Part shown: positions 5,436 through 34,697 of the stretch, one piece after another | Layout of the letters: each line of letters opens with the position of its first letter | Position numbering within the stretch: position 1 is the first letter of the stretch | Source of the DNA: Octopus bimaculoides | Taxonomy: Eukaryota | Direction of reading: 5' to 3' | DNA length: 64,000 nt | NCBI RefSeq assembly: GCF_001194135.2 | Contig: NC_068993.1 | Span: forward strand, 61,521,896-61,585,895 | The notes under the pieces: generated by a model | The model's database searches: none | The model's input: only the letters and a program-made list of their open reading frames with translations | Told to the model about the DNA's origin: nothing | Program-made: the position numbers and the translations under genes

Positions 5436-6117
5436 TTCTTAACAATGAAATCTATCAGTATTTCAACTCACAATATATGAATATGCTTGTTGTTTTCTTT
5501 TCTATAATTTATTTCAAACAAATATTCCTTCAACTATATGTCCATCAACTGTACTGCAAAGTCCTTTATAAATGTAGCTAAGTCCATTTAGAATGCAAAA
5601 TTATTTTGTATTTCCAGACATGGATTATAAAAGTGTTGCTAATAATCTCACTCAGACGAAACCTTTCACCATAATTCACCAGATTTTAGATAAACATGGT
5701 CGTATTTGTTCCATATAACATTTTCCCTTTGTCTCTAAAAGATGATAAATATTGATGATGCTTCTGATGTAAAAAAATGATTTTCTATACCAGTGTCACA
5801 TAGTATTCTGAAATAATAAAGAAAACATTATAAGACAGAGAGGATATTTAAACAGAGTAGAATCCACAGCAGAAATTTAATTAATTTTCTATACTGAGAA
5901 ATTGTAAAAGTAAACCTTTATCTGGATTTATTCAGTGTATTTGAACATTTTAACGTGTATATTTATATTATCAAAGTATAATAAATCTCTACAAAAATGT
6001 ATTGAGCAATCCTGCAGTTTAGGCTAAATTGTTTTTGTAACTTGACATAAAAGCAGACATAACTGCATAAACAAGTGCCATTCCCTTAATTGTTGCATAA
6101 AGAAGTTTCAATCTCTC

Positions 6118-6465
6118 ATGGCGCTCCGTCAGTTACGACGACGAGGGTTCCAGTTGATCCAATCAACAGAACAGCCTGCTTGTGAAATTAACGTGCAAGT
6201 GGCTGAGCACTCCACAGATATGTGAACCCTTAACGTAGTTCTCGGAGATATTCAGCGTGACACCGAGTGTGACAAGGCTGGCCCCTTTGAAATACAGGTA
6301 CAACAGAAACAGGAAGAAAGAGTGAGAGAAAGTTGTAGTGAAAGAGTACAGCAGGGTTCACCCCCCTCCTCTTGCTGGAGCCTCGTAGAGCTGTAGGTGT
6401 TTTCGCTCAATAAACACAACGTCCAGTCTGGGAATCAAAACCATGAGTCTACTGCCCTAACCACA
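6118..6465 (-). mobile_element. tRNA-derived SINE family C
   Basis: Reverse complement of the head at 8834 plus the tail at 45058-45340 (…gctgaatatccccgagaactacgttaagggt…ggaaccctcgtcgtcgtaac). Confidence 0.82.
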
Positions 6466-7762
6466 TTAAATGTATTCGGGTGCGTGGGGAGGGGGTAGAT
6501 ATCGAGGAACATTAATACATGTCTCAGTAACAAAGAAACGAGGAAGGTATCAGGTGACTGTGAGATATGCTAAAAATAACAGCTAAATCGCTCTTAAATT
6601 AGTCACACATTTTGCTTTTTTTTTTTTGCATAATCATACGAATACCTGAGTGTAGAACAGAAATTCGCAAATATTTTCTGAAAATTTCCCAAAATAAAGA
6701 AGTTGTGAGAGGTTACATGGGTGCTTAAATCAGAATTCTGTCACAAATTTTCCCGAGGGTAGGGAGAGGAGTTTCAGAAAATTCATAAATATAAATGTAC
6801 ATGTGAGTGTGTTTGACAGCCAATGTTGGTTTGTTTATGTCTCCGTAACTTGGTGAGTTCGCCTAAAGAAACCGATTAAATACCAGGTTTTAAAAAAACA
6901 AAAAAACGTAGTAAATATGGTTTCGGTTTTATCATTAATGGTGACCTTACACAATTTAATAACATTTACTTTTTCTGTAGAATTGGGAAAAGGTTGAGAG
7001 GAAAACTTCCCAAACAAATGGTCATGGGTTCAGTTCCACAGCATCGCCTGAAGTCCAATAAATGAAACAAAAATCTAATGGCGAAAGTGCGAGAGAAAAA
7101 TTCATTCGTAGTGGTTGGAACGAAAGATATTTTCAAAAATGCGACTTCGAAGAAATAATTTTTCAAGAATGGAATGGTAATTTCAGGACGAAGGGAAGAA
7201 AGGATTTGTCAAAATCACGGGTTATTAAATGCAAATTACAAGGGTTTCACAAAAAGTAACGAAAAGAAATCGTGAAAAGCAGGATGAATAGTGGGGAGTG
7301 CGCTTTTGTTTTTTGCTTTCTAAATGCGAATTACAAATTATTCTGAATGTGGAATATACTAGAATGAAGAATAATTATTTAAAAAAAAAATTCATGTGAA
7401 TCGTGACAGCGATTCCGAAGGCACAAAAGAGAGGAAGAGAGAAAGAAAGAGAGAGATATTTCAAAAACAAGCGAAGATACATAAGAGACTTTAAAAAAAA
7501 AAAAGCAATTTACATGTTTTGCATTATGCGATTCTATAAAATACCGAAATATGCCAAAGAAGAAGAAATAAACCTCCAAGAAAGTCCATTTTATTGGTGA
7601 TAGCTATTCCGAAAGCTCATTTTGACAAAGGAAATTACGATTCTGATCCAAAATTTCGGCGGATTATCGTAAAATATTAAATTGAGGGAAGGGAAGAGAA
7701 CCGCCCCTCCCCAATTCTTTGTCCTTTTCTTTTATATAAATTTGAACACTATAAATACTCAC

Positions 7763-7870
7763 TCCTCGTTTTATCTTTGAATCTCTTTGATAAATTCAAT
7801 TAACACGAGAGAAAGTTCTCCCTCACCGGAAATGGTTATGGTAGATGCTGGGCGGAAGTAATAAAATCTG
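7763..7870 (-). other. Putative non-coding first exon of ZF2 (donor GTGAGT at 7762-7757; acceptor CAG before 5807)
   Basis: Reverse complement aligns with 32570-32660 (gaact...tgttaat.gaatttatc...gtgagtatt). The start is approximate. Confidence 0.6.
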
Positions 7871-8116
7871 GATAAACATTTATTATCATAAATACTAGCA
7901 TATCCGTGTCGTCAAAAATACCGACAGTTTTATTAATGATATAAAGTGGTTCATCAACGCAATGGAAGAAACCATTGCTATATGTTAGCTATGTAGTAAA
8001 TATACGAGATATTTTCTTTTTTGGTTGTCAGCGTCCATTTTCGGTTCGAATTGATTTCATATTCAGTGTAATAATACACTTTTATAGGCTAATTAACGAG
8101 GTGAAAGTAATTTTCT

Positions 8117-8632
8117 TTTACTTGCTTCAGTCAGTTGATTGCGGCCATGCTGGAGCACCACCTTTTGTCGAGAAAATCGACCCAGGACTCATTCTTTGTA
8201 AGCCTAGTACTTATTCTATCAGTCTCTTTTGCCGAACCGCTAAGTTACGGGGATGTAAACACACCAGCATCGGTTGTCAAGCGAAATTGNNNNNNNNNNN
8301 NNNNNNNNNNNNNNNNNNNNNNNNNNNNNNNNNNNNNNNNNNNNNNNNNNNNNNNNNNNNNNNNNNNNNNNNNNNNNNNNNNNNNNNNNNNNNNNNNNNN
8401 NNNNNNNNNNNNNNNNNNNNNNNNNNNNNNNNNNNNNNNNGGGGGGGGGGGAGACAAACACATATATATATATACGACGGGCTTCTTTCAGTTTCCGTCT
8501 ACCAAATCCATTCACAAGGCTTTGGTCGGCCTGAGGCTATAGTAGAAGACACTTGCCCAATGTGCCACGCAGTGGGACTGAACCCGGAACTATGTGGTTG
8601 GTAAGCAAGCTACTTACCACACAGCCACTCCT
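8117..8632 (-). mobile_element. tRNA-derived SINE family A, full length (spans a gap)
   Basis: Reverse complement of the element at 43346-43780 (GGAGTGGCTGTGTGGTAAG head, GGTTCAGTCCC B-box-like motif, central microsatellite, 3' module). Confidence 0.85.
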
Positions 8633-8833
8633 AGCTATTATCTTAGTCAATCGTAAGCCACAGACACATACATAGCTGTTTCGATAGAAAGAAGCAGATA
8701 TGAGAAGTCTTTTGCCTCTCAAAGTGCCTGTTACGCTAGCAACACGTGAATCCTAGCAGTCTTTGAAAAGTCTTTTATCTGCGAGGAAGCACGTGTTGAC
8801 AAATTTGACGCTCTGTTCTGTGTGATTATGGCA

Positions 8834-9094
8834 GTGGAGGTGCAATGGCCCAGTGGTTAGGGCAGCGGACTCGCGGTTTCGATTCCCAGACCGGGCATTG
8901 TGAGTGTTTATTGAGCGAAAATACCTAAAGCTCCACGAGGCTCCGGCAGGGGATGGTGGCGAACCCTGCTGTACTCTTCCACCACAACTTTCTCTCACTC
9001 TTTCTTCCTGTTTCTATTGTGCCAGTAATTCAAAGGGTCAGCCTTGTCACACCGTGTCACGCTGAATATCCCTGAGAATTACGTTAAGGGTACA
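8834..9094 (+). mobile_element. SINE family C, 3'-truncated
   Basis: gtggaggtgcaatggcccagtggttagg (A box) ... gtttcgattccc (B box). Confidence 0.82.
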
Positions 9095-9275
9095 ATAATG
9101 ATGAAATCACATTGTAACGTTACCTGAGAATGGGAAATATATTGTTTTTAGACAGCTTCTGACTTGTCTCCCATCAACCAACTCACTATATCACATCTCA
9201 ATTGAAATCAATACAAGACCTGGTTAGATGTTCCAAATACAAAATAGGAGAAAAATAATTGAAGAGTAGACCAGT

Positions 9276-9281
9276 TTTATT
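9276..9281 (-). terminator. Candidate poly(A) signal of ZF3
   Basis: TTTATT on + inside the paralog-conserved 3'UTR block. Confidence 0.55.
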
Positions 9282-9564
9282 TAGATTCCAAACTGTTATG
9301 AATATTCACTAAGGCTGGTGCAGTCAGAATTCTGGAATTTGAAATCTACAGTTAAAATGATGAAATGTCTGAGAAACATTGACAACGGACACAAGAATAT
9401 TGATGATGATGATAATTAAAATATGACTCCACATACTTTGTATTATGTAAATTTTAATACCACAATGACACTTGCAAAATAATATAGCCATGACTTTTCC
9501 CATATGAATACATTAGTTAATAGATTACTGTAAGACAACAATCTACTTCAATGATCACAAATGA

Positions 9565-10512
9565 TTACTCTTTAGCATGAATACGTTTGTGTACAGTTAC
9601 TGCAGTACGTTGAGTGAATGCTTTACCACAGATATCACAATGATATGGTTTTTCTCCAGTATGAATACGTTTATGTCCCTTTAAATCATAACTCCGAATA
9701 AATGCTTTACCACAGATATCACAATGAAATGGCTTTTCTCCAGTATGAATACGTTTATGATCAGTCAAAGAATTACTTCGAGGGAATGATTTTCCACAGA
9801 TATCACAATGGTATGGTTTTTCTCCAGTATGAATGCGTTTATGTCCCTTTAAGATACTACTTTGAACAAATGCTTTACCACAGATATCACAAGGAAATGG
9901 CTTTTCTCCAGTGTGAATGCGTTTGTGTCCTGTCAAGGCACTATTTTCATGGAATGTTTTGCCACAGATGTCACACCGATAAGGTTTCTCTCCTGTATGA
10001 ATGTGTTTGTGTACAGTTAATTCATCATTTCGAGAGAATGATTTGTCACAAATATTACAGTCATAGGGCTTTTCTCCTGTATGTATACGTTTGTGTTTAA
10101 TTAGCTGATTGCTTTGATTGAACGACTTACCACAGAAGTCACATTGAAATGGTTTTTCTCCAGTATGAATGCGTTTGTGGTCAGTCAGGTTAGTACTATT
10201 GGGGAATGATTTACTGCACATATCACATTGATATGGTTTCTCTCCTGTGTGAATGCGGATGTGATTAGTTAAAATATCTTTACGAACGAATGACTGACCA
10301 CAGATATCACACTGATATGGTTTCTCTCCTGTATGAAGACGTTTATGAATAGTTAACTCACTATTTCGAGAGAATGATCTACCACAGATATCACAGTGAT
10401 ATGGTTTCTCTCCTGTATGAATACGAATGTGAATAGTAAGATAACCTTTTGTAGTGAATGACTTTTTACAAGTATCACACTCGTATGAAGACTTTGCCAA
10501 CTTTTTTGCCAT
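9565..10512 (-). CDS. ZF3: C2H2 zinc-finger protein (11 fingers)
   Basis: ORF with TGEKP linkers. The ATG at 10512 ([12 protein letters not shown]) is chosen by homology to the paralogous starts; the ORF-track start at 10536 is a non-ATG codon. Confidence 0.93.
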
Positions 10513-10817
10513 TTCTTTAGAATAAGAATAAGTCATTTAACTCATTTAAACAATTTTTCTTCTTTCACTGAAGTATATATGTTTATTTTCCTTTTTATAT
10601 TTCTAACAAATACACCTGTTATGTGTCCATCAACTGTGATCTATGCTGCAAAGTCGTTTATCTACAAGGCAAAATTATCTCTCATTTATTCTAGACATTG
10701 ACATACACAAATATTGCTAAAAGTCTCACTCAGCAAAAACATTTCATCATAATTCATCAGTTTTATATAAACATGGTTACAATTGTTCTGCATAACATCT
10801 TCCTTTGTCTTTAGAAG

Positions 10818-10990
10818 ATCATCATCATCATCATCATCATCGTTTAACGTCCGCTTTCCATGCTAGCATGGGTTGGACGATTTGACTGAGGACTGGTGAA
10901 ACCGGATGGCAACACCAGGCTCCAGTCTGATTTGGCAGAGTTTCTACAGCTGGATGCCCTTCCTAACGCCAACCACTCAGAGAGTGTAGA
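10818..10990 (-). mobile_element. RTE-type 3' tail with (GAT)n, inserted in the ZF3 leader exon
   Basis: (CAT)n-gtttaacgtccgctttccatgctagcatggg... interrupts sequence that is continuous in ZF2 (5730-5770). Confidence 0.75.
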
Positions 10991-12544
10991 CCACTCGCCT
11001 CTGATGTAAAAAAAAAAAACAACTTTGTACCAGTTTGAGCCAGGATCCTGAAATAAGGAAAAGAGTGTAAGATATAAAGAATACTTACACAGCAGAAATT
11101 TTTATTTTGTTTCAATATCGATAAATTGTATACATGAATCTTGAATAGAACAACTGAATTCCTGAAGTGTATCTATATATTTACATTCTGTTATAACAAT
11201 TAATCAGACACTCCGTTGGTGATCAAAAGAGCAGCCTGCTTATGAAATTCATGTGAAAATGGTTGAGCACAGAATAAAACAATAATTAAAGGAATCCATA
11301 GATGAAAAAATGGTTGCGAACCCGCTTTAGAATGACGAAAAATAACGGGAAAGAAAGCAAGAATTATGTTAATCCGAAGGCTCAATAGGAAGGAAAAGAG
11401 GGGCAGAAACATTAAAAAAAAAAAAAAANNNNNNNNNNNNNNNNNNNNNNNNNNNNNNNNNNNNNNNNNNNNNNNNNNNNNNNNNNNNNNNNNNNNNNNN
11501 NNNNNNNNNNNNNNNNNNNNNNNNNNNNCTCCGTACCTCAAGGGTATGCCCTGGCACTTCGTCACTATCTCGCTCTTTTACTTGACCATCCCATTTGTAT
11601 TCCGATCCCCGCTTTTGTGAGTATGCCCTGGCACTTCGTCACTGTCTCTCTCCTTCTCCTCCCTCAGGCTGGGCAACCACGTGTGCCCTTCACAACAGCA
11701 CATCCGTTTCCGTCCTCATTCTTAATCACTCTCCCTTTGACCAGGTAACCATGTACTTCCTCTACAGCAAGACACCTATTTCTGCCTCTCTGTCTCCTTT
11801 CATCATTTGATATAAGATCACCTCCTCCAATATACCCTCCCCTCTCAAATAAAATTTCTCTTGCAAGTTACTTGGTGGCCCTGTCAGTGCAGGTGCCACT
11901 TGAAATGCATCCACTCCACTCTGTAAAGTGGTTGGCATTTGGAAGGGCATCTAGCTGTAAAAACCATGCCAAAACAAATAAACAGACCAAAATATCAGTC
12001 TGTTTATACAAACTTACCAAAAATTGCTTATATGTCGGCGGTCATTATATCTCCTTTCCCAACATACATAGACCACAACTGATATGAGTATTACATTATT
12101 TTATGACTTGTGCCCTTCACGAAACATTTTCTTTCTAATTATCTAAAACATTTTTCTAGAAATTTAGCCACCTGTCAGCTTTATGCCATGAATGGATGAC
12201 AACAAAACCAAAGATGTGGTGTGTCCCACTGACGGTCGATTGTGGTTAAATAACACATCATAGCCAGAAATACAAAACAACTATTCAGCTGATAAGACGT
12301 GGACGACCTGCTTGAAATAGCAGCCTAATTTCCCTCAAAGGCAGAAGTGTCGAACATGTCTCCTTCGCATTTCGATGTTACGATAACAGACACCATCTAC
12401 CGCGAACTTTTCTTTCCTGCCTCTTAGCTATGCTGCATTAATTTTTTTCCGTCCGTTACTCAGCGCCAATTTGGAATCGAGCTGTTCTCGAATTCCTACG
12501 AAACTATGGTCAACAATAAATCTTAAATTGTGTCTATATATTCT

Positions 12545-12655
12545 TTTATATTTTCGATTATAAACGTATTTCTTGGTTATTTCCAACCACGACCACTTCT
12601 AGTAAAGAACTTTCAAGTTGATCGACTCAACCAGCGAAATATAAAGGAAAAAGAA
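12545..12655 (+). other. Putative non-coding first exon of ZF4 (donor GTAAGT at 12656; acceptor CAG 15170-15172)
   Basis: Block ccaaccacgacca...gaactttcaagttgatcgactc...agcgaaatata...aagaa|gtaagtattta, repeated upstream of ZF5, ZF6 and ZF7. Confidence 0.65.
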
Positions 12656-14518
12656 GTAAGTATTTATAGTATTTAAATTATTTCGAAGTCAGAGTTTCGG
12701 AATAACTCATTGTCTGATGGTGGTGTAGGAGATGAAAATGTCAAAGAATTGGCGAGTTTATTTCCCCCTCTTTCATTTTTTTTAATGCTTCATACAACAG
12801 AAGTTACGATTCAGAAAGGATTTGTTTTCTTAAAATTTAAATATTTTATATTTTAACCCTCTCCCCAATTCGTGAGCCTTTTTCCTTCCCCAGGAAATGC
12901 TGATTGCTGTTTTGAAACTTTCGGTTTGGCTGTCCNNNNNNNNNNNNNNNNNNNNNNNNNNNNNNNNNNNNNNNNNNNNNNNNNNNNNNNNNNNNNNNNN
13001 NNNNNNNNNNNNNNNNNNNNNNNNNNNNNNNNNNNNNNNNNNNNNNNNNNNNNNNNNNNNNNNNNNNNNNNNNNNNNNNNNNNNNNNNNNNNNNNNNNNN
13101 NNNNNNNNNNNNNNNNNNNNNNNNNNNNNNNNNNNNNNNNNNNNNNNNNNNNNNNNNNNNNNNNNNNNNNNNNNNNNNNNNNNNNNNNNNNNNNNNNNNN
13201 NNNNNNNNNNNNNNNNNNNNNNNNNNNNNNNNNNNNNNNNNNNNNNNNNNNNNNNNNNNNNNNNNNNNNNNNNNNNNNNNNNNNNNNNNNNNNNNNNNNN
13301 NNNNNNNNNNNNNNNNNNNNNNNNNNNNNNNNNNNNNNNNNNNNNNNNNNNNNNNNNNNNNNNNNNNNNNNNNNNNNNNNNNNNNNNNNNNNNNNNNNNN
13401 NNNNNNNNNNNNNNNNNNNNNNNNNNNNNNNNNNNNNNNNNNNNNNNNNNNNNNNNNNNNNNNNNNNNNNNNNNNNNNNNNNNNNNNNNNNNNNNNNNNN
13501 NNNNNNNNNNNNNNNNNNNNNNNNNNNNNNNNNNNNNNNNNNNNNNNNNNNNNNNNNNNNNNNNNNNNNNNNNNNNNNNNNNNNNNNNNNNNATACATAC
13601 GTGTTATATTTCAATAAAAGTTTCGAACTGAAAAAAAAAAAAATGATTTTGTTTGTAATTTTGTCAGTGCAAATCAGCTGTTAACATGCCGTACAGACAA
13701 AACTTTTTATAACCTGGCAAAAGTATGTGAAAAGAAATCTTTATTCTTGAACGTTATGACGGTGTGTGTGGGGAGTGGAAGGAGAATTAAAAAAGGGAAA
13801 GGACTATTACAAGTGTTTCAGAATGTAGAAATGACAAAAAATAAACGAAAAAGAAAACTAATTTTAGTGGTGGCTGCTATTCCACAAGTACAGAAAAAGG
13901 AGGAGGGCAAAAGTTTTAAAAAAGCCCACAGATTAAAACCTTTTTATTAAAAGGCTCCACCAGTGTTTCAAAGGTGTGGTGTGAACCAAGAAGTTTGGAA
14001 CTATCCAAACTAAAACAGAAATTCCAAATTATTTGGAGACAGCGTTTCCGAAAGTCGGCCAATGTCTTTTTTTTTTTTCACGTCATTTCTTTGTATTTGA
14101 TATTCCAAAACACTTGCTATATACATTGAAAAATAAAATTTCAACCTCCTCTTTCATCGTACCGAAAGGTTTCCAGTCGTATGTTCTTAGCTTAAATCGT
14201 TAGTAGTCTTATGTGTGCATGCATTTGAATTTGATCTTCCCACCCAGAACAGTTCTTGGTGAATAGTCCTTGCTGCATTTTTGTTGTTGTCAGTATTGTT
14301 ATGTTTATCATTGTCTGTATGACAGCTAAACCTTTCTTTTATTGCACTCAAAGTTTTTTCGAATTTTAAACATCTGTAACGTTTTCTTCAAATTTTTTCT
14401 CCACAAGATCATGGATTCACTGCAATAAGAGTGGAAAACTACATCAATATAACCAATTTTCAGATTTTTTACTTCTGTTTAAAAAATGCAGATTCTGTGA
14501 ATCAATTTAACTAGATCC

Positions 14519-14895
14519 TCAAAATCTATACTGCTCAGTTATTTGAGCAAGTAAATGTTCAAACTATATTGGAGTACCTCCTCTGCTGCATGAATTCAGT
14601 TAAATATGTAGGGAACAAGCCTGAGGAGGTACTGTAAATATGATTGTATCTGTATTTGGTTTGAACCCATATTCCTTCCATGTGATTTGTGTGGACACCT
14701 GTGGTTTCAATTACAAATGACATGAAATGGTTTATAGTGAAGTACAAGAATCCATGACTTGGTAAGTTCTGATATACTGTTCATTCATCAATAAATATAC
14801 ATCCTGGGTGGACATGCTGGAGTTTCATTGTTTTGCAGGGGTGCAGTTGATTGGCTATATGGATAAGAAACACTTTTCGTGAATGTTTAATTCAT
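14519..14895 (-). mobile_element. Merlin (IS1595/ISXO2-like) transposase remnant, C-terminal part, in ZF4 intron 1
   Basis: ...[27 protein letters not shown]...[10 protein letters not shown]; typical NH..FV...TG.HTN..E..W and YL.EF motifs. Confidence 0.8.
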
Positions 14896-15561
14896 ATCCT
14901 TTTGTTATCAGCTGTTGTCCTATAATATTTTCTCATGGCTAGACATGTGTTCAAGGATGACTGGAATCAAATAACCCTGCTTGCACAATGGTGGCAGTTG
15001 CTTACAGCTAACATGTGACATTAAGGTGATGAGACATATTTCTCTACTCTAATTGTTTGGGTTAATGTGTATTCTGTACTACATTTTTCTATTGATAAAT
15101 TATAATTTCCTCTAAAGACACTATCCTTTTTAAGTATCCTCTGTAATGTGTAGTGTTTCTGTATCATTTCAGGATACTGGCTGAAACTTGCAGGAGAAAT
15201 TTATTTACATCAGAAGCATCATCAATATTTATCGTTATTTAGAGACTAAAAATGTTATTCAAAACAACTGTAACAATGTTTTTTTTTTAAATTTGATGAA
15301 TTCTGGTGAAATGTTTATCAGCAACATTAGTGTATGTCACTGTCTGGAATGAGAACAAAATACTTTGCATTTTGTATAGACTTAGATATATTTTTATAGG
15401 ACTTTAGCTTGGATCATAGTTGATGGACATATAGCAGAAGGAATACTTGTTAGAAATAAATTATAGAAAGAGAAACAAGAAACACATTTGAATATTGTGG
15501 TGAGAGAAGGAACATTAATGTCAAATAAATCAAAAGATTGATTTTTTTTTACTATGGTGAG

Positions 15562-16548
15562 ATGGCAAAAAATTTAAGAAAGTCTTCATATGAATGTGAT
15601 ATCTGTAAAAAGTCATTCACTACAAAAGGTCATCTTACTACTCATGTACGTATTCATACAGGAGAGAAACCATATCAGTGTGGTATCTGTGGTAAAGCAT
15701 TCAATCAAAATGGTGAGTTAACTATTCACAAACGTCTTCATACAGGAGAGAAACCATATCATTGTGATATCTGTGGTCAATCATTCACTCGTAAAGATAT
15801 TCTAACTACACACATACGCATTCACACAGGAGAGAAACCATATCAGTGTGACATGTGCTGTAAATCGTTTGCTAAAAGTACTAACTTAACTGATCACAAA
15901 CGCATTCATACTGGAGAAAAACCATATCACTGTGATTTCTGTGGTAAGTCGTTCAATCAAAGTAATCAGCTAATTAAACACAAACGTATTCATACAGGAG
16001 AAAAGCCATATCACTGTGATATCTGTGACAAATCATTCTCTCGAAATGACGAGTTAACTGTACACAAATACATTCATACAGGTGAGAAACCATTCCACTG
16101 TGATTTCTGTGGCAAGTCTTTCCATGAAAATAGTTCATTGACTGGACACAAACGCATTCACACTGGAGAAAAACGATTTCATTGTGATGTTTGTGGAAAA
16201 GGATTCATTCGAAGCATAGATTTAAAGGGACATACACACATTCATACAGGGGAAAAACCCTATCACTGTGATGTATGTGGTAAATCATTCTCTCGAAATG
16301 GTGACTTAACAACACACAAACTCATTCATTCTGGAGAGAAACCACATCATTGTGATATCTGCGGCAAGTCATACCGTCGAAATAATGAGTTAACTATTCA
16401 CAAACGGACTCACACTGGGGAGAAACCATTTCATTGTGCTAGCTGTGGTAAATCATTCTCTTACAATTGTCGGTTAAATAAGCACAAATGTATTGGTATG
16501 GAAGAAAAACTCTATCATCATAATGTTTTTGGTGAATCATTCTCTTAG
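15562..16548 (+). CDS. ZF4: C2H2 zinc-finger protein (11 fingers)
   Basis: [15 protein letters not shown] start at 15562, homologous to paralogs; last finger ends HKCIG; TAG at 16546-16548. Confidence 0.93.
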   Translation: MAKNLRKSSYECDICKKSFTTKGHLTTHVRIHTGEKPYQCGICGKAFNQNGELTIHKRLHTGEKPYHCDICGQSFTRKDILTTHIRIHTGEKPYQCDMCCKSFAKSTNLTDHKRIHTGEKPYHCDFCGKSFNQSNQLIKHKRIHTGEKPYHCDICDKSFSRNDELTVHKYIHTGEKPFHCDFCGKSFHENSSLTGHKRIHTGEKRFHCDVCGKGFIRSIDLKGHTHIHTGEKPYHCDVCGKSFSRNGDLTTHKLIHSGEKPHHCDICGKSYRRNNELTIHKRTHTGEKPFHCASCGKSFSYNCRLNKHKCIGMEEKLYHHNVFGESFS

Positions 16549-18600: not shown

Positions 18601-19049
18601 TCAAATACTGACGTCAGCACTTTCGGTTGAGATTCTCCAATCAAAATTGCAGACCTTATGTCTGAATTAGAAACAATTATTTATTAGCCCCATATCAGTC
18701 CTGCTCAGCAGACATGTAATGCAAGATATCTCTACATGACCGTTTAGTCTTTAATGGTATTGTACATTTTGTTAAATATAGTCCTCAATTTCGAGATTGA
18801 GCAATATAATCCAAAGGAAATTAGGCTGCTATTTCTAGCTGGTTATCTGTAGAGGCTTCCATCCGTTATGTAGTTTGGTCTTGAGAAACAATGACTAATT
18901 ATTCTTACAATCATTTTTTCATTTCTTGGTCACACTGCGTTTAATTTTTTTTTTTATTCGTTACATAACAGCTACTTAGAAAAAGAAACGTTATCGAATT
19001 TTATACGAAACAGTGGTTAACAATGAAGCTCAACGTTTGTCCATACATT

Positions 19050-22000: not shown

Positions 22001-22861
22001 GCTAGATGTCCAAATCTTTCCAATCAACTTTTTATGATGGTTGCACAACAAAATTATGTCTGAACCATGTGGTTGGTTAGTAAGGTACTTGCCACACAGC
22101 CACTCCTGTGCACATATATATATATATANNNNNNNNNNNNNNNNNNNNNNNNNNNNNNNNNNNNNNNNNNNNNNNNNNNNNNNNNNNNNNNNNNNNNNNN
22201 NNNNNNNNNNNNNNNNNNNNNNNNNNNNNNNNNNNNNNNNNNNNNNNNNNNNNNNNNNNNNNNNNNNNNNNNNNNNNNNNNNNNNNNNNNNNNNNNNNNN
22301 NNNACACACACACACACACACATGTAAAAATTTAATGATACACAAGAGTTCAGTTGTTCAGGTAAAGGTTTCCTTCTACAATTTATAATAAATTTCTGCT
22401 TTAGAAACTACTGTTTAAATATATCTTACTCTTTTTCTTATTGTTTCAGGATAGAAGCTGATACTGGCATAAAAGAAAAAAAATTGTATTCATATTAGAA
22501 GCATCCTCGATGTTTACGAGCTTTTGGAAACTGCAGATGTTATACAGAACAAATATGACCATGTTTTTATAAATGTGGCAAAAAGGTTTCCTCTGGTTGA
22601 GAATATTGGCAACCTTTGTGTAAGTCACTATTTAGAATGTGTTTGAGATAATTTTGCATTCTAAATAGACTTAGATATTTTTTTTATAAAAGACTTTGCA
22701 GCATAGATTGCAGTTGATGGAAACATAGCAGAAGGAATGTTTGTTAGAAGTGAATTATAGAAAGGAAAACAACAACACTTATTCACATATTGTGGTGAGA
22801 GAAGAAACCTTGTTAAATGAATTGAAAGATTGATTTTTTTTTTGTTTTTTATTCTTAAGAG

Positions 22862-23929
22862 ATGGCAAAAAAATTAGGGAAATCTTCATATGTGTGTTGT
22901 ATTTGTGAAAAGTCATTCTCTTCAAAAGGTCATCTTACTACACATATACGTACTCATACAGGAGAGAAACCATATCACTGTGATATCTGTGGTAAAACGT
23001 TCTCTCGGAAGGATGAACTGACTACTCACATTCGTATTCATACAGGAGAGAAGCCATATCATTGTGATATCTGTGGTCATTCATTCACTCGTAGAGATAT
23101 TTTAACTACACACATCCGCATTCACACAGGAGAGAAACCATATCAATGTAATATGTGTAGCAAATCATTCTCTAAAAGTACTAATCTAACAGATCACAAA
23201 CGCATCCACACTGGAGAGAAACCATATCAATGTAATTTTTGTGGAAGATCATTTAATCAAAGTAATCAGCTAATTAAACACAAACGTATCCATACAGGAG
23301 AAAAGCCCTATCACTGCGATGTCTGTGGTGAGTCATATCCTCGAAATGATGAGTTAACTGCTCACAAATATATTCATACAGGTGAGAAACCGTATCAGTG
23401 TGATACCTGTGGAAAATCATTCCGTCGAAATGGTGATTTAACTATTCACAAACGCTCTCATACTGGTGAAAAACGATTTTATTGCGATGTTTGTGGTACA
23501 GGATTCAGTCAGAGTAATGATTTAAGGGGGCATATACGTACGCATACTGGGGAGAAACCCTATCGGTGTGATATCTGTGACAAATCATTCACTCGAGGGG
23601 ATGAGTTAACTGTGCACAAAAACCTTCATGCAGGAGAGAAGCCACATCAGTGCGATATCTGTGGGAAATCTTTCAGTCGAAAATATGATGTAACGACACA
23701 CAAATCCATTCATAGTGGAGTGAGACCGCATCAGTGTGACATCTGTGGTAAATCATTTCTTCGCAAGAATCAATTGACGACTCACAAACGTAGTCATACT
23801 GGAGAAAAACCATATCATTGTTATAACTGTGGTCAGTCATTCAGTTACAGTTATCGGTTAACTCAGCACAAATGTATTGGTACAGGAGAAAATGTGTATC
23901 ATGATATTTTTGGTAAATCATTGTCTTGA
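22862..23929 (+). CDS. ZF5: C2H2 zinc-finger protein (12 fingers)
   Basis: 355-aa [18 protein letters not shown]... made of tandem C2H2 repeats; last finger ends HKCIG. Confidence 0.94.
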
Positions 23930-25778: not shown

Positions 25779-25934
25779 ATATATATGATCAGCTTATTTC
25801 CGTTTCCCTCAACTAAAATCCTCTCAAGGCTTTGGTCATTCCAGACCCATAGTAGAGGTCACTTGGCCATAGAAATAATTTAGACATATTTTTATATATG
25901 AACATACTAAAATAATCAACAATTGTAGAAAAGT

Positions 25935-26280
25935 TTGATCGACCCCAGTACGCAACAGGTACTTAATTTATCGACCCCGAAAAGATGAAAAGCAAAGTCG
26001 ACCTTGGCAGAATTTGAACTCAGAACGTAAAGACAGACGAAATACCTATTTCTTTATTGCCCACAAGGGGCTAAACATAGAGGGGACAAACAAGGACAGA
26101 CAAAGCGATTAAGTCGATTACTTCGACCCCAGTGCGTAACTGGTACTTAATTTATCCACTTTGAAAGGATGAAAGGCAAAGTCGACCTTGGCGGAATTTG
26201 AACTCAGAACGTAACGACAGACGAAATACCGCCAAGCATTTCGCCCGGCGCGCTAACGCTTCTGCCAGTTCGCGGCCCTT
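25935..26280 (-). mobile_element. Tandem/nested SINE family B copies
   Basis: Two gaaaggatgaaaggcaaagtcgacc...gaatttgaactcagaacgta cores. Confidence 0.8.
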
Positions 26281-26324
26281 CTGTAGCAGAGTATATCAAG
26301 AATACATTATTGAACATAAACGAA

Positions 26325-26620
26325 GGTGCGTGGCTCAGTGGTTAGGTTATCCGGCTCACGATCGAAAGGTCGTGAGTGCGATAGCCGGTGGCGCGTTGTG
26401 TCCTTGAGCATGATACTTTATTTGACGTTGCTTCTGTTCAATCAGCTGCCAAATATGAGTAATAACTGCATTTCAAAGGGTTACGCTTGTCACACTGAGT
26501 CACGCTGTATCTCCCCGAGAACTGCATCGAAGGTGCGCGTGTTTGTGAAGTGTTCAGCCACTCGCACGTTCATTTCACGCTAGGATCAAATGGAACACTC
26601 GTCGTCGTAACGAAGTGCCA
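26325..26620 (+). mobile_element. SINE with a different tRNA head and the family C tail
   Basis: tggctcagtggttagg head; 3' half aligns with the family C tail. Confidence 0.7.
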
Positions 26621-26889
26621 GTTTGTTGAATACGGTCCTCCAATTCAAGGCTGAAATATATAATCCGAGGGAAATTAGGCTGCTGTTTCTAGCAGGTCAT
26701 CTATACATGTTCCCTTGCTGCTATGTAGTTTTTGAACCCTGGGAAACTTATGAACATTTTCCCATCTGTTGGTCACATTGCATTTCATTTTTTCTTTTAT
26801 TTATTTATTATACAGAACCTACTTAGAAACGAGCCGTTATCGAATTTTGTACGAAACAGTGGTTCACAATGAATCTCTGAGTGTTTCCA

Positions 26890-26994
26890 TATATTCTTTT
26901 AGATTTTTGATTTTAAACATCTTTCTTGATTATTTTCTGGCGAAGAACTTCCAAGTTAATCGACTCTTATCAGCGAAATATAAAATAAAAAGAA
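26890..26994 (+). other. Putative non-coding first exon of ZF6 (donor at 26995; acceptor CAG 28506-28508)
   Basis: Paralogous first-exon block ending aagaa|gtaagtattta. Confidence 0.65.
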
Positions 26995-28331
26995 GTAAGT
27001 ATTTAATGTTTTTAAACCTATATAAAATATTTTTGGACTGATGGGTTTATGAAAAGGCCAACGAAACGGGAACCTGTTTCTTTTTTTTTATTTCTCATAG
27101 AAGAGAAATTACGATTCTGAAAAGTTTTATCGTAAAATTTTAATTTCTTATTTTTGCTCCCTTTCCCCAATCATCATGAAGTATTGCTTGCTATTTCGAA
27201 ACGCTTCAATTTTCAATATTTCATTTCATTTCTTAAATATTTTCCCTCCACCTCTACATTTCGTGTACCCTTAATAGAATTCATACTGACTTCTTTTCTC
27301 TATTTCGAGCATGGCTATATCCCTGATAGGATCAGGGTCTTGTCTTCTTTCCTACTTGCTAAATTCACTTTGTGGTCTCTTATTCTGGGCTTTGTTTCAA
27401 TGTCTGGAAATTCTTTTCTAAGTCTACAGATTCGGCTATAAGAACTAGGTGATAACGATGCTGCTATGGCAGTTATCGGGTATGAAGGACTCGTATACCG
27501 AGAGACTAATCCACACCCCACCTACCCAGACATGTTTAGCTTCTCAGTACATATTAGTTTTTTTAATTTTTTATAGCGATTGAAACATCTATCAATTAAA
27601 AGATTTTGTAGCTATGCTTTTGGTCTTTTAGAGCTTAAACAAACTCCTAGCCTAACCTAAATCGTTCATAGGCTTATAGGTACATCTTTTAATTTGATTT
27701 TCCGTCTTGAACATCAACTATTTGACCATTTCGTGGATAGCCCTTGTTCCTTCTTTGCCATAATCATTGCGTATGACAAGCGATAGTTTTATTGCACCCA
27801 AAGCTTTTATTTTAAAAAACAACAACCATTCAACATGTTGCAGTTTGGTTTTAACTATCTTTATATATANNNNNNNNNNNNNNNNNNNNNNNNNNNNNNN
27901 NNNNNNNNNNNNNNNNNNNNNNNNNNNNNNNNNNNNNNNNNNNNNNNNNNNNNNNNNNNNNNNNNNNNNNNNNNNNNNNNNNNNNNNNNNNNNNNNNNNN
28001 NNNNNNNNNNNNNNNNNNNNNNNNNNNNNNNNNNNNNNNNNNNNNNNNNNNNNNNNNNNNNNNNNNNNNNNNNNNNNNNNNNNNNNNNNNNNNNNNNNNN
28101 NNNNNNNNNNNNNNNNNNNNNNNNNNNNNNNNNNNNNNNNNNNNNNNNNNNNNNNNNNNNNNNNNNNNNNNNNNNNNNNNNNNNNNNNNNNNNNNNNNNN
28201 NNNNNNNNNNNNNNNNNNTTGTACATGTACAATCATGATTTTAATTCAGTATTCATTCCAACTACCTGACAAATGGGAACGTGAAACTCTTGAGTAACAG
28301 TTCTGTGATAATTTTGCAGCTTTAATAAAAA

Positions 28332-28374
<43 letters not shown>

Positions 28375-28888
28375 ATTGTAGTGATGTGCAACTGTTTAGC
28401 TGAAAATTTACTTCTACAATTTATAGAAATAAAATAAAATTTTCTGCTATAGAATCTCTATTGTTTAAATATCCTCTATATCTTACACTGTTTCTCTTAT
28501 TATTTCAGGATACTAGCTGACATAAGAATTATATCTTTACATCAGAAGCATCCTCAATATATATCATCTTTTAAAGGCAAAGGAATATATTATACAGAAG
28601 AAATATAACCATGCTTATATAAGTCTGGTGAATTATGGCGAAATGTTGCTTCTAAGATTATTAACATTTGTGTAATTCACTGGCTGGAATAAGTACAAAA
28701 TAATTTTTCATTCTAAATAAATTTAGATAAATTTATAAAGGTCTTTGCAGTTAATTGATAGACATATAGCAGAAGGAATATTTGTTAGAAATAAATGATA
28801 TAAAAGGAGAACAAGCAACATACTGTGGTGTGAGAAGAAAATGTTTTTAGTTCAATGAGTTGAAAGATTGAGTTTTTATCCTGAAGAA

Positions 28889-29860
28889 ATGGCAAAAAAC
28901 TTAGCAAAGTCTTCATATGAATGTGATATCTGTAAAAAGTCATTCACTACAAAAGGTCATCTTACTACTCATGTACGCATTCATACAGGAGAGAAACCAT
29001 ATCACTGTGATATCTGTGGTAAAGCATTCAATCAAAATGGTGAGTTAACTATTCATAAACGTGTTCATACAGGAGAGAAACCATATCATTGTGATATCTG
29101 TGGTCAGTCATTCGTTCGTAAAGATATTTTAACTACACACAGACGTATTCATACAGGAGAGAAACCATATAAATGTGATATGTGCTGTAAATCATTCTCT
29201 AAAAGTACTAACTTAACTGATCACAAACGCATTCATACTGGAGAAAAACCATACCAATGTGATTTCTGTGGTAAATCATTCAATCAAAATAACCAGTTAA
29301 TTAAGCACAAACGCATTCATACAGGAGAGAAGCCTTATCACTGTGACATCTGTGACAAATCATTCTCTCGAAATGATGAATTAATTGCTCACAAACACAT
29401 TCATACAGGTGAGAAACCATATCAGTGTGATACCTGTGGTAAATCATACCCTCGAAATAATCAGTTAACTACTCACAAGCGCACTCACACTGGAGAAAAA
29501 CGGTTTCATTGCGATATTTGTGGTAAGGCATTCTCTCATAGTAATGTTTTAAAGGGACATAAACGCATTCATACTGGAGAAAAACCCTATCACTGTGATA
29601 TCTGTGACAAATCATTCTCACGAAATGATGAATTAACTATTCACAAACACGTTCATACAGGAGAGAAACCATATCAGTGTGACATGTGTAGTAAGTCATA
29701 CCGTCGCAAAAACCAGTTAACTGCTCACAGACGTATTCATACAGGAGACAATCCATTTCATTGTGACAACTGTGGTAGATCATTCTCTCACAGTAGTCGG
29801 TTAACTAAGCACAAATGTAATAGTGTAAGAGAAAAACTATATCAGCGTAATATTTGGTAA
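28889..29860 (+). CDS. ZF6: C2H2 zinc-finger protein (11 fingers)
   Basis: ATG at 28889 ([12 protein letters not shown]); tandem fingers; last finger ends HKCNS; stop arises from a frameshift in a decayed terminal finger. Confidence 0.93.
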
Positions 29861-30424
29861 ATCATTCTCTGAAACATGACAATTATTCACATCTGTATTC
29901 TTACATGAGAGAAAACACATCACTTTGTTATTTGTAGTATCTCATCGTACTATAATTAGATCTAATTATATTTAATATTCAACTGAACTGTATATATATA
30001 TTTTTTATGTATTCTCGTATATTCTTGTTTTGTTATTTTTTTTATGCATTCCATCAGATGACTAATTTTATTTGTAATATGAAAAGTTGTATCTATGGTC
30101 CCTTCATGACTTTATTGTGGCACTAAATGTTAATTTGTCAATGTAGCATTAAACTTTAAATAAATGCAAGGTGTTTAGAGTAATTTTTGAATTATCCTTA
30201 ATGGTGTTCTTTTGCCCATTGTATGCAGGTAAACATTGGTTGATGGGAGACAAGTCAGAGGCTGTCCTAGGAGAAGATATTTCCCATTTTCACCAGAACT
30301 TCTGAATAAAAAATATATATGTATATAAAAATAAAAATATATACTAAAAATGAAGAAAATATATACTAAAAATAAAATAAATATATACTAAAAATAAGAT
30401 AAATATATATAGGAAAAAAAAAAA

Positions 30425-30965
30425 GCACACATGTCGAGCAGAGGTTGGCAATACCTGTGCTGAGTTTTAGGTCCAATGAGGCTTGCACAACACCTCATAA
30501 ACCCTCTCCACTTTGTTGACATTATCCAGAGACAAGCCGGAGCAAGATGTCTGGTGCCAATATGAGTTGCAGGCTCAGGGATGTGGGAGCGCCGTGATCT
30601 CTAGCACAAACCAAAGATCCCCAAAATGTCCAATGCCATTCCCTGCATATTTGGTTTCATATCAGAGTGACCTTCTCCTAGAGACATGCTTCAACAAAAG
30701 CTGAGGGGTGCCTCACTCCCAGTGGTCTTTCAGCCCACCGGACACCATCCCGGAATTTCTGTGTACCCGTGCTATTGCTAGATAGCTGTTGAGCCTGCAC
30801 TAGGTCCATCCGATCTTTCAGCAGGTCTTGTTTTTAATCCTGTTGGGATTCTAGCAACCCTCCTCACCAGGGTAGCCGAGTGGGGGTGCCAGTTTAGTCG
30901 TCGGCAACCCGACCATGCAACAGGTTGTACTGGATTACGTGTTACCAGTAGCACTTATGAGAGCC
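30425..30965 (-). repeat. Unclassified GC-rich interspersed repeat, possibly a non-LTR 5' region
   Basis: Abrupt ~50% GC block after an A-rich tract in 30% GC surroundings; no ORF. Classification is unsupported. Confidence 0.35.
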
Positions 30966-31146
30966 TCATATGTGACCTGACATATTTTTCCCCAATATTA
31001 ATAATTTCAATAATCCTGAACATATACCAATGACTTTTGCATTATATCATAGGGATTAAACCAGTGGAAGACCTCAAATTAATTATGTGTGTGTGTGTAT
31101 ATATATATATTTATATATATATGTGCATCTATATATATGTATAATA

Positions 31147-31210
<64 letters not shown>

Positions 31211-31741
31211 GCATATATGGATACAGGACATCACCAATGGTTCAAACAACATGAAATAAATAAACAAACGTGTTAAATACATAAACGAGAAAAAAAAATG
31301 GAAAACAGGACAAGTAAACACAGAGAAAGGACCCTTCATCAGTTGTCGGCTGTCTATCTACTTCTCATTTTGAGCATTGAACGACAATATGAGTCTTCAA
31401 AGACAGTTGCTCCCATAAGTACCAAAATAAAATTTGGTATTTATGGAGATTCAAAGTTGGGAATAAAAACAGGACAGTGGAGACATACAAGGAAACCGAA
31501 TGAAAACAAACATGGTGGGTCGTTAGACCAGAACGAGAGAAAAATAGTGAACACTGTAAGAAACATTTTTTTGAAGAGTGAATAGATAGAAGAGAGAGGA
31601 AGAAAATGTCTGCACTTTTGAACGTCTGTGCAGAAAAGAAAGATGGACACATGAGGAAAAGATGGATGTTAAATGATGATGATGATGTTTAGTAAATTCA
31701 CTTTTTTGAGGCAATGATTTATAATAGATATCATAGCTGCA

Positions 31742-32130
31742 ATGATGGCTGTGTGGTAAAATGTTTACCTCTCACCCACATGGTTCTGGGTTCAGTCCTA
31801 TGTGACATCTTAGGCAAGTGTCTTCTACTCTAACCTTGGCCAGACCAAAGCCTTGTGAATGGATTTGATAGAAGGAAACTGAAAGAAACCTGTTGTGTCT
31901 GAGTGTGCATGTGTTTGAGTCTTCGTGTCTTGACATCATGTGATAGTTGTAAACGAGTGTCACCGTCATACAAGCAGTGTCATTCATTTCCAATAGTCTG
32001 CATGAGAACATGTCTAACCATGAGGAAATAACACCTAGCTTGGAAACAGGTAAGGGTTAGTGAGAGGAAGGGCATCTGCCTTAAATAAACCCTGTGCAAC
32101 CCATATGCAAGCATGTAAAGAGGACTTGAC
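31742..32130 (+). mobile_element. SINE with a family A head and an alternative RTE-type tail
   Basis: Head as family A; tail contains ggaagggcatc...cccatatgcaagcatg, as in the (GAT)n-ended tails at 10818-10990 and 36874-37120. A reverse-oriented relative lies at 20805-21145. Confidence 0.65.
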
Positions 32131-32539
32131 CAATCACAAACATATCCATATGGGGATATCCACATCATTGTAATCCTAACCCTCATTTAAAGTCACAGAT
32201 TTTTTTCTAAGACATTACCCTTAGGATTCAGTTTTGTGTGTGTGTGTGTGTATTTATACATGATAGAATATAGTTTTAAATTTCAGACTGAACAGTATGA
32301 TGTGACGGAAATTCGGCTGCTATTTCTAGCAGGTTGTGCTAGTACATAATGGAGCCATTGCTGCAACGTAATTGTTTAGCCCCGGAAACGACCCGATCAA
32401 ACAGAATTATGATTTTCTTTTCATGTCGTGGCTAAGCTGCATTGGTTGATTTCAATCAATACACAACACCAGTTATAGTCAAGCTGTTACCGAATTAACT
32501 ACGAAACTGCGGTTAACAATAAATCTCTAAATATGTCCA

Positions 32540-32650
32540 AATGTCCTTCTTTGTTTTGTTGCTTCTCTCTTGTGTCCACCGTTGCCAATTCCTCGGAGGA
32601 ACTTCAGTGTTGTTAATCGAATTTATCGACGAAAAACGAAAGGAAAAGAA
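32540..32650 (+). other. Putative non-coding first exon of ZF7 (donor GTGAGT at 32651; acceptor CAG 34265-34267)
   Basis: Paralogous block ending aagaa|gtgagtatt, most similar to the ZF2 copy. Confidence 0.6.
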
Positions 32651-34697
32651 GTGAGTATTCTCAAGGCAAAGTTTTAAAATATTTCATTGGTATATTTCAA
32701 AGGCATATATAATTAGGGGCAGCTTTTCTTTTTTAGTATCGTTGTATTTCATACAAAAGAAATTACGATTCTATGAAATTCTATCCGAAAACTTCAGTTT
32801 TTCTTAATTCTGCTTCTCTTCTTCTTCTTGTGTCCGTTTCCTTCCCCATGGCAGCTATTCAGAAACTATTTAGTTTTCAGCATTTCATTTTCTTTCTGTT
32901 CCTTTTTTTATATATTCCCTCCTACATCACTACATTTCTTGCCCGTCCATAGTAACATTAAGTTCGGCGAATAGAACTCCTATTTACTCCTTTTACACAT
33001 TTCAAGCATGGTCATTTTCCCGACGGGGATGTGGTCCCGTCTTCTTTTCTACTTACTAATACTTCACTCGATGGAGTTCTGGGCGGAGCTGAAGAATACG
33101 TACACCACCCGTTTTCGGCGTAACAAAAACCCTAACCCTAACCAACGTGTGTATTCTTTACTTTCGCCGAGTTCTGATCGAAGTACATCATCTAATCCGT
33201 CATAACTCCTATTTTTTGAATTTTCAGAATAACTTAGCGAATTTGTGTTCTACACACTGGACATCGTACGATTATGCAAATAAAAAAATATATATAATTT
33301 TCCTCCCCCACCAATCCTAAAACTTCCTCTCTTTTTTTCCAGTTTAAAAAAGAAAAACATCAGTTTTAAACCACGGACAATCCGAATCTACCATTTGTTT
33401 TTAACTAGTTCCTTTGATTTAAGGGAGATTTAGCTGTTGTTTCTAGCACATCTCACAACCTTCCTCGTTTATTTGTCACTTTGACGTATTTATGCTTTTC
33501 GATATTTTTCTCCCTGTAAACACATTTAATGGAATGATGATGTGGAAGTAACACACAGGTTTTGTTTAGCTTAAGGGTGGTCCATTGCCGGGATTTAAGC
33601 AAAAACAAAAAAAAAAATTTTTTATACCCCCCACCCAGCCTGCACCAAGCGAGTGTGTGTGGTGTAAGAAAAAACATTTACTCAGATAGAACTATGCTAT
33701 TAAAATATATTATTTTTTTACATAATTTTTTAAAATCATTGTCCCAGTTTCAAGTTTTCCAATACTGGTATGATCAATATGGATTAAGTCTAATTTGAGC
33801 ATCTGTAAGGATGGTTGGGGGTGAAATGATTTTAATCAAAAAATTTTTTTTACATAATCATACAAGATAGAATTTGCAAAGCACAAATTTGCAAAAATTT
33901 TCTGAAAATATAAAAAACTAGAAAAGTAATGATTGGTTTATGTGATGTGTTCCAATCCAGAATCGATAAGAAACATCCCCCTCTCCCTACACACACTATC
34001 GGCTTCTCAGTTGGCATCTGCCAAATCCACTCAGGGTTTCGGTTGATCTTGGGCTGTAGCAGAAAACACTTACCCAAGGTGCCACACAGTGGAACTAAAC
34101 CAAGAATCTTGTAGTTAGGAAGTAAACTTCCTACCACACAGCCATGCCTACACCTTAGTGGAGGAATTCAGATGTTCAAGTAAAAGAAATTAAATTTCTG
34201 CTATAGAATCTTTGCACTTAAAATAATTGTCCTCTCCATCTTATTCTCTTTTTTATTATTATTTCAGGATACTTGCTGACGTTGACATTAAAATATATTT
34301 ACATCAGAAGAATCTGCAACATTTATCATCTTTTAAAGACAAAGGAATATGTTATACAGAAGAAATATCACCATGCTTACATAAATTTGGTGAATTGTGG
34401 TGAAAGGTTTCTTCTGGGTGAAAATATTAGCAACACTTTCTGTAATTCACTGTCTGGAATAAGTACAAAATAATTTTGCATTCTAAATAGACTTTAGATA
34501 AACTGATAAAGAACTTTGCTGCATTTTTAGATATTTTGGTTAAAGATCATGGTTGATAGAAATACAGCAGAAGGAATATTTGTTATGAATACATTATAAA
34601 AAAAGGAAAATGAGAAGCATATGCATATATTCTGGTAAGAGAAGCAAATTTTTGGTTAAATGAATTAAAAGATTGATTTTTCTTTCATTCTGAAGAG

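Follow-up and report, generated by a model that had tools for sequence, protein, structure and literature searches.

A probably untranslated leader shared by a tandem cluster of octopus C2H2 zinc-finger genes, with a probable short relic of lost N-terminal codons

We describe here a 64,000-nucleotide (nt) stretch of the Octopus bimaculoides genome (assembly GCA_001194135.2, chromosome CM046613.1, ~61.52-61.58 Mb; hereafter ‘the window’) and, in particular, the repeated sequence or ‘leader’, of 370-430 nt, that sits immediately upstream of six of its genes. The window is AT-rich (35% G+C) and holds a tandem cluster of C2H2 zinc-finger (ZNF) genes, each represented by a poly-finger open reading frame (ORF). 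Two of these ORFs lie on the minus strand, namely ZF2 (4722..5435; 237 amino acids, aa) and ZF3 (9565..10512, as read from an ATG that opens with the residues MAK), and their exact products are absent from the annotation; the other four, ZF4 (15562..16548), ZF5 (22862..23929), ZF6 (28889..29860) and ZF7 (34698..35879, a fusion ORF), lie on the plus strand. The annotated coding sequences of ZF4 to ZF7 all begin at the MAK ATG (15562, 22862 and 28889 for ZF4, ZF5 and ZF6, respectively), which is also the start codon taken in an earlier note on this DNA. That note, made from the sequence alone, had read the leaders as the fossil of an acidic N-terminal domain of ~120 aa, whose inactivation would have preceded expansion of the cluster; it is this reading that we re-examine.

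The leaders occupy 5436..5807 (ZF2) and 10513..11047 (ZF3) on the minus strand, and 15173..15561 (ZF4), 22450..22861 (ZF5), 28509..28888 (ZF6) and 34268..34697 (ZF7) on the plus strand; that of ZF2, for example, would be the untranslated 5' part of the finger exon, running from a TTTCAG splice acceptor to the ATG at 5435. A profile built from the six returns exactly six copies when run against the window (E = 1e-84 to 1e-108), and all of them, ZF4, ZF5 and ZF6 included, can be aligned over their whole length with a nucleotide identity of ~77%, so that the homology of the six, and the positions given for them in the earlier note, are borne out. When whole units are compared in pairs, homology begins ~480-510 nt upstream of the ATG, runs across the ORF and continues into part of the 3' flank. 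Every leader in the window begins directly 3' of a polypyrimidine tract and TTTCAG.

Two of the copies depart from the rest. The leader of ZF3 is longer owing to an insertion at 10818-10996 (minus strand), comprising a 155-nt segment like a short interspersed nuclear element (SINE; GGAAGGGCATCCAGCTGTAGAAAC..CATGCTAGCATGGAAAGCGGACGTTAAAC) followed by (GAT)n, which together replace ~18 nt of leader; the insert may resemble an abundant octopus SINE. The leader of ZF7 retains a 21-nt segment, ATTTTTAGATATTTTGGTTAA (34515-34535), that is found in no other copy in the window, the five remaining leaders having its deletion in common, but that recurs in O. vulgaris leaders (loci L005, L006 and L008, introduced below). 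This distribution suggests that either ZF7 is the earliest-branching copy or the deletion has spread among the others through gene conversion.

Relatives outside the window were reached through a 60-aa N-terminal query, which returned 14 short proteins, and these led in turn to five loci of O. vulgaris (L005-L009); a search with the full-length ZF6 protein gave a ranking filled by vertebrate ZNFs, and no cephalopod relatives. The leader profile matches all five loci (E = 1e-16 to 5e-61), and every O. vulgaris copy is situated directly upstream of a poly-finger ORF in the same orientation. The statement in the earlier note that similar leaders occur on other octopus ZNF genes is correct. At least four O. 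vulgaris subfamilies, told apart by their N-termini, carry the leader (MENELRRSEVECKRESEELDFSDEEKNEKSKTSFDC in L005, L006 and L009; MEKSEKLQELITSEQMIKEKKNLSYDC in L007; MRKEMTSYDC in the third L007 copy; and MSEELRKSSYDC in L008), and the leader must therefore be older than the cluster in the window. Ten leaders, drawn from three subfamilies and both species, are alignable end to end, and the TTTCAG is invariant in 10/10 of them, behind a pyrimidine tract and a CTTAC-like motif that lies ~20 nt before the CAG, at the distance of a branch-point; the L008 leader, which lies outside this ten-sequence alignment, likewise has a TTTCAG acceptor.

Might the leader once have been translated? The peptide strings that gave rise to this idea are real, in the sense that FTSEASSIFI, KDKG..YTE(E/Q)I.PCL, NNFAF* and DGHIAEGIFVRNKL*K (asterisks marking stops) can each be read in piecewise frames, and so are the stops said to be common to several copies: TTA-TAG-AAA is found at 5507 in ZF2, at 15461 in ZF4 (the TAG itself at 15464) and at 22755 in ZF5, with TAA at the corresponding position in ZF7 (34594), and TTC-TAA is found in ZF2, ZF5, ZF6 and ZF7. 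Such motifs and stops are shared because non-coding copies that are ~77% identical will be translated alike, and they add nothing beyond that identity. Counting lesions, as the minimum number of stops and frameshifts needed to read through a leader, gives 5-6 per copy against means of 5.2-6.8 for dinucleotide-preserving shuffles of the same sequences (P = 0.42-0.63), and the antisense strand, with 2-6 lesions, exceeds the sense strand in no copy.

Substitutions among the six leaders are spread evenly over the three codon phases (73/83/85; p = 0.60), as compared with 53/57/117 (p = 4e-8) over the initial 642 nt of each finger ORF, which served as a control. This rules out the leader having been coding during expansion of the cluster; since a domain that had died before the expansion would predict no phase bias either, the within-cluster test is uninformative under the model of the earlier note and could not have supported it. 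Between subfamilies, the phase is again flat in every ungapped run against the O. vulgaris subfamilies compared, Ov7a and Ov5a (p = 0.31-0.79), in what is a test of low power. The rate of change points the same way. Mean pairwise difference within the cluster is 0.234 for the leader, set against 0.215 for third codon positions and 0.102 for first and second positions together, and leader drift is therefore about neutral; between subfamilies the leader differs by 31-32% and the third positions of the first two fingers by ~40%, again as would be expected of roughly neutral change.

Nor are there protein relatives of the kind that a lost domain might have left. Translations of the consensus in three frames, along with a frame-corrected path, gave no credible match in Pfam (the single match having E = 0.24, at 11.5 bits vs a cut-off of 27), and, when set against 5.8 billion proteins (O. 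vulgaris and O. bimaculoides entries among them), the same translations drew no match at E <= 1. Pfam models for KRAB, SCAN, BTB and ZAD, run against the leader translation and the N-termini of relatives, gave nothing above noise at E <= 10 (FiNZ has no Pfam model). The longest open stretch, IYIRSIINIYHLLETK..., which lies in a frame that the earlier note did not use and extends for 49-67 codons in ZF3-ZF7 and 54 in the consensus, was considered as a real exon and rejected: it has no ATG, there are stops after the acceptor in three copies, similar open stretches exist on the antisense strand, it is closed in O. vulgaris, and its substitutions show no phase bias (35/25/32; p = 0.42). A profile of this stretch, when compared with 1.84 billion representative proteins, gave one match (E = 4.5e-6), in which the profile fell four times on HL(V/M)NTGEMF of P0135, a 58-residue tandem-repeat protein; we regard this match as spurious.

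The gene structure of the relatives is more telling. Annotated O. vulgaris coding sequences that begin MENELRR, MEKSEKL or MSEELRK all start downstream of the leader homologue, the first two (at RKI/ME...) some 330-750 nt downstream of the TTTCAG acceptor. In the two subfamilies with a long N-terminus, ~90% of the leader lies upstream of the start codon and contains stops in all three frames; this part is therefore untranslated in the relatives as well. Moreover, the aligned Ov5 and Ov7 leaders share the TAA within ‘YTE(E/Q)I*PCL’, which ZF2, ZF5 and ZF7 no longer have. This stop is thus ancestral and was removed by drift, rather than being a lesion, so that at least one of the stops quoted as damage was there from the outset.

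The O. vulgaris leaders have features of their own, which we record here. That of the MENELRR subfamily carries an extra 384-nt block between its distal and proximal parts (L005 9553-9936, minus strand, and the same in L006), with an apparent internal duplication of ~80 nt. At ~10001-10030 of L005 (plus strand), the annotated first coding exon of a neighbouring head-to-head gene, P0123 (MSEFRRYILQ), is antisense to the distal leader of the minus-strand ZNF gene, reflecting either a bidirectional arrangement or an artefact of annotation.

The final 36-52 nt of every leader in the window are a different matter, for they are collinear with the beginning of the coding sequence in relatives, specifically the first 15 codons of L007 (MEKSEKLQELITSEQ-M) and ~27 codons of the MENELRR...DFSDEE subfamily. 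In ZF7 (34653..34697, plus strand), 45 nt correspond in length to the 15 codons of O. vulgaris MEKSEKLQELITSEQ; the old ATG now reads TGG, and the segment, when read in frame with the present ATG, gives WLNELKD*FFFHSEE, with one TGA. In ZF6 (28848..28888, plus; 41 nt) the relic is frameshifted and the old ATG has become TAG; in ZF5 (22810..22861, plus; 52 nt) the ATG has become TTG, a T-run is expanded and there are in-frame stops; and in ZF3 (10513..10552, minus; 40 nt) the ATG has become TGT, again with in-frame stops. A deletion of ~30 nt in ZF2 (5436..5471, minus; 36 nt) has taken the region of the old start, and in-frame stops are present here too. Only ZF4 (15518..15561, plus; 44 nt) still has an ATG at the old position, and this is out of frame with the main ORF, opening an upstream ORF (uORF) of 7 codons that ends in TGA. 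Every copy contains at least one stop between the position of the old start and the present ATG, while the present start (SEE-M-AK..SSYEC) aligns with an internal methionine of the L007 proteins (SEQ-M-IKEKKNLSYDC).

Since two O. vulgaris subfamilies and the O. bimaculoides protein XP_014773923.1 (MEKSENL) still have the long start, this is by parsimony the ancestral form, and we would accordingly read the change of start codon in the window as a loss rather than a gain; the direction is drawn from three start-retaining lineages, and not from an outgroup phylum. A short form also exists in O. vulgaris: in L008, whose protein begins MSEELRKSSYDC, ATT stands in place of the old ATG and a single in-frame TGA is present, and the third L007 copy (MRKEMTSYDC) is likewise short. 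Loss in the lineage of the window genes would, on this evidence, probably predate both the split between the species and the expansion of the cluster. The peptide concerned, of 15-27 residues, is charged, has no Pfam match and evolves faster than the leader itself; among MENELRR paralogues, the annotated N-terminal peptide has diverged by ~11% and the non-coding sequence upstream of it by ~4%. What was lost is a short charged peptide and not a domain, and the relatives in which it persists are finger-only proteins all the same.

The idea of fossil coding sequence upstream of the fingers is hence refuted for ~90% of its span and upheld, in miniature, for the last 36-52 nt; similarly, the proposal that inactivation preceded expansion of the cluster probably holds for loss of the long start, given that L008 has the same form, and fails as regards any domain.

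Synthesising these findings, we favour a simple model, to which we would assign a probability of about 0.8: the leader is the ordinary untranslated 5' part of a terminal exon, co-duplicated with its gene, to which a small N-terminal truncation has been added. The leader would make up the 5' stretch of a large terminal exon in an octopus-specific C2H2 gene, reaching from the 3' splice site to the start codon, and would have been copied along with the finger ORF at each tandem duplication, thereafter drifting at a neutral rate. We suggest that only its last 36-52 nt were formerly coding, from an ancestral ATG ~45 nt upstream (M-E-K/N-..), and that this N-terminal stretch was disabled in the lineage of the window cluster and the O. 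vulgaris short-start gene. Initiation would then have shifted to a methionine that is internal in the Ov7 subfamily, and the short charged peptide would have been dropped. The mature mRNA presumably includes the leader, behind an upstream non-coding exon; if so, the upstream ATGs (uATGs) of the leader, 6-9 per copy with uORFs of 1-21 codons, and 1-2 standard deviations (SD) fewer than in shuffled sequences, may dampen translation.

Several observations weigh against this model. The inclusion of the leader in mature mRNA, the true start of transcription and use of the acceptor are all deduced from conservation, and 6-9 uATGs per leader are awkward for a 5' untranslated region (UTR) that is to be scanned efficiently. 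Homology between units ends ~100-130 nt upstream of the acceptor, although neutral divergence is only ~0.25. The old-ATG alignment falls in a T/A-rich, indel-prone stretch, such that base-level statements about the relic are approximate. Lastly, in the MENELRR subfamily no stop interrupts the frame over the 45 codons that precede the annotated ATG (EGSLQHLQILIKITFDGDISVEIFVKSNIREEGKPLCTVTRERKI; L005 9412-9546, minus strand, with counterparts in L006 and at L009 15690), through the DG.I..IFV block, which could point to an ancestral ORF of greater length. Because a stop closes the same frame 7-8 codons upstream in L007, as also in one copy of L009, we take the open stretch to be due to chance, for which our own a priori estimate, given the composition, is ~4%.

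That open frame, the stops common to paralogues and the truly coding-derived proximal 36-52 nt are the points in favour of the whole leader being the wreck of a ~120-aa acidic effector domain, dead before the expansion and leaving behind finger-only competitors. Against them stand lesions at the level of shuffled sequence with an antisense strand at least as open, flat codon phase within and between subfamilies, the want of any credible Pfam match or of a relative in 5.8 billion or 1.84 billion proteins, an ancestral ‘I*PCL’ stop that three copies in the window no longer have, and closure of the O. vulgaris frame in other copies; relatives with an intact N-terminus, starting as they do downstream of ~90% of a leader with stops in all frames, leave such a domain very unlikely. 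There is likewise no basis for the suggestion that the cluster encodes effector-less competitors or dominant negatives, the relatives being essentially finger-only too. An origin from an exapted transposable element is scarcely credible: octopus genomes are rich in repeats, the ZF3 leader has taken up a SINE and there are reverse-transcriptase ORFs close to the genes of O. vulgaris, but all copies of the leader found (six in the window, and about eleven in the O. vulgaris loci) are directly upstream of a ZNF ORF in the same orientation, none stands alone, and Pfam offers no credible match. We also consider it quite unlikely that the leader falls outside the mature coding mRNA, as the 3' end of an intron or as an alternative or retained segment, with the finger exon beginning from the T-run and AG beside the ATG. 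A GT donor-like site (TGTG/GTGAGAG; CTG/GTAAGAG in ZF7) does occur 60-90 nt before the ATG, the T-run is followed by AAG immediately before it, an annotated gene model takes the ZF7 donor at 34635, and the many uATGs would be tolerable in a segment removed by splicing. The resulting mini-intron (GGTGAG ... T-run AAG), which we tried as a candidate and rejected, would be only ~40-75 nt long, with ~40 nt in ZF2, and the invariant acceptor is the upstream TTTCAG rather than the proximal AG; the homologues of both ‘donor’ and T-run in O. vulgaris are coding or near-coding (CTGTGACAAGAG = TVTRE; GATTTTTCT = DFS), so that their resemblance to splice sites is incidental.

A functional reading of the leader, as a regulatory 5' UTR module (with damping by uORFs, or a protein-binding block) held under weak selection across subfamilies, is unlikely, though it does have points to recommend it: the leader has been kept end to end, behind an invariant acceptor, in at least four subfamilies and two species; conservation in the block GTTGATGGACATATAGCAGAAGGAATATTTGTTAGAAAT, at 0.80 within the cluster and 0.70 between subfamilies, exceeds that of the remaining leader; and each leader has its complement of uATGs. 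Saying this, the overall rate equals that of third positions, large indels are tolerated (the 155-nt SINE in ZF3 and the 384-nt O. vulgaris block), the conserved block is deleted in the third L007 copy, and uATG counts are within 1-2 SD below the shuffle expectation. Rfam, searched with the whole window, gave no family at the gathering threshold, and RNAalifold predicted zero pairs in the best-conserved leader block. We can also imagine, as a doubtful variant, that the leader, or its best block (GTTGATGG.ATATAGCAGAAGGAATATTTGTTAGAAAT), forms a shared regulatory cassette with the 28-nt element GGAAATTAGGCTGCTATTTCTAGCAGGT or, less likely still, that the distal leader is a much older coding exon, intact in unsampled cephalopods. 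Such a cassette, were it real, would amount to a common non-coding exon 1 or promoter with a uORF-rich 5' UTR, co-regulating or throttling an octopus-specific ZNF family.

The 28-nt element, GGAAATT(A/C)GGCTGCT(A/G)TTTC(A/T)AGC(A/T)GGT, occurs four times in the window, where none would be expected by chance: at 12306-12333 (minus strand), and at 18816-18843, 26670-26697 and 32307-32334 (plus), each with 0-1 mismatch to this degenerate search pattern. The copies sit 1.8-4.0 kb upstream of ZF3, ZF5, ZF6 and ZF7 in the same orientation and between flanks that cannot be aligned; the position expected for ZF4 is within an assembly gap (12936-13592). The element holds an inverted repeat (CTGCT..AGCAG) and ends in CAG/GT, which makes it a candidate for the end of a non-coding exon 1 or for a promoter element, and it was not found in the O. 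vulgaris loci L005-L007.

Several further observations concern the window itself. The ORF of ZF7 is a fusion of a two-finger remnant, the last ~30 nt of a second leader in frame, and a full finger array, and an analogous fusion through the tail of a leader is seen in O. vulgaris (L006 8370-9293, minus strand; HCDISGKSFVKSNIREEGKPLCTVTREMKIMENELRR); together these suggest that unequal recombination between units would repeatedly convert the ends of leaders into coding linkers. An annotated gene model of 570 aa, with Sugar_tr/MFS_1 domains, begins at an ATG within the ZF7 leader (34610), with a first exon of 25 nt (34610-34634) and a GT donor at 34635, the ZF7 ORF falling within an intron; this model is probably chimeric or the product of read-through, but may be a hint of transcription across the leader. 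A partial poly-finger ORF (64-678, plus strand; 204 aa, listed from an internal TTG, with no start codon) is found at the window's left edge, on the strand opposite to that of ZF2 and ZF3 and with no copy of the leader beside it within the window. None of the five assembly gaps in the span studied falls within a leader or finger ORF, the closest lying on the upstream side at distances of 147 nt from the ZF5 leader, 291 nt from that of ZF6 and 382 nt from that of ZF3; the continuity and frame of the leaders are therefore unaffected, and the gaps limit only what can be said of intergenic sequence.

How does this compare with systems already described? Loss of a start codon, followed by initiation at a downstream in-frame methionine, is a common route to the shortening of ORFs in duplicated genes. 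The window conforms to this pattern, in that the old ATG has been replaced (TGG, TTG, TGT or TAG) or deleted in 5/6 copies, the present start aligns with an internal methionine of a relative, and the former codons are still recognisable as 5' UTR; only 15-27 codons have gone, however, encoding a low-complexity charged peptide rather than a folded domain. An expansion of C2H2 ZNF genes was reportedly described in this same species by Albertin et al. in 2015. The present cluster is of the same kind as those of the octopus C2H2 expansion, having finger-only proteins in tandem (iScience 2025, PMC12513265); a term search of the latter article finds no mention of N-terminal regions, exons or UTRs of cephalopod ZNF genes.

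Vertebrate KRAB-ZNF and FiNZ-ZNF genes, as set out in Wells et al. 2023 (PMC10547256), form lineage-specific tandem clusters in which the finger array occupies one large terminal exon behind an acceptor, and the octopus cluster resembles both the KRAB-ZNF genes and the cyprinid FiNZ-ZNF genes in its tandem arrangement of poly-finger genes and its terminal-exon array behind an acceptor. In KRAB and FiNZ genes, however, the effector is a conserved coding domain, whereas the sequence between acceptor and fingers is untranslated in the octopus, and the N-terminal peptide of the octopus relatives (15-35 aa) matches no Pfam model and changes more rapidly than the leader. The closest analogy is the glutamate-rich 28-aa peptide that precedes the fingers in cyprinid FiNZ (same source), although this is a conserved coding element, unlike the octopus leader. 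The cephalopod passages of that paper contain nothing on leaders or gene structure.

Finally, we regard this as an ordinary finding, with little significance beyond annotation. The ZNF proteins of this cluster have not become ‘effector-less’ through loss of a large domain, and the case serves as a warning that ‘peptide motifs’ shared among paralogous non-coding copies are weak ground on which to propose lost coding sequence. For the family itself, the leader provides a landmark for gene structure: an invariant acceptor, a leader of 330-750 nt and two alternative start positions.

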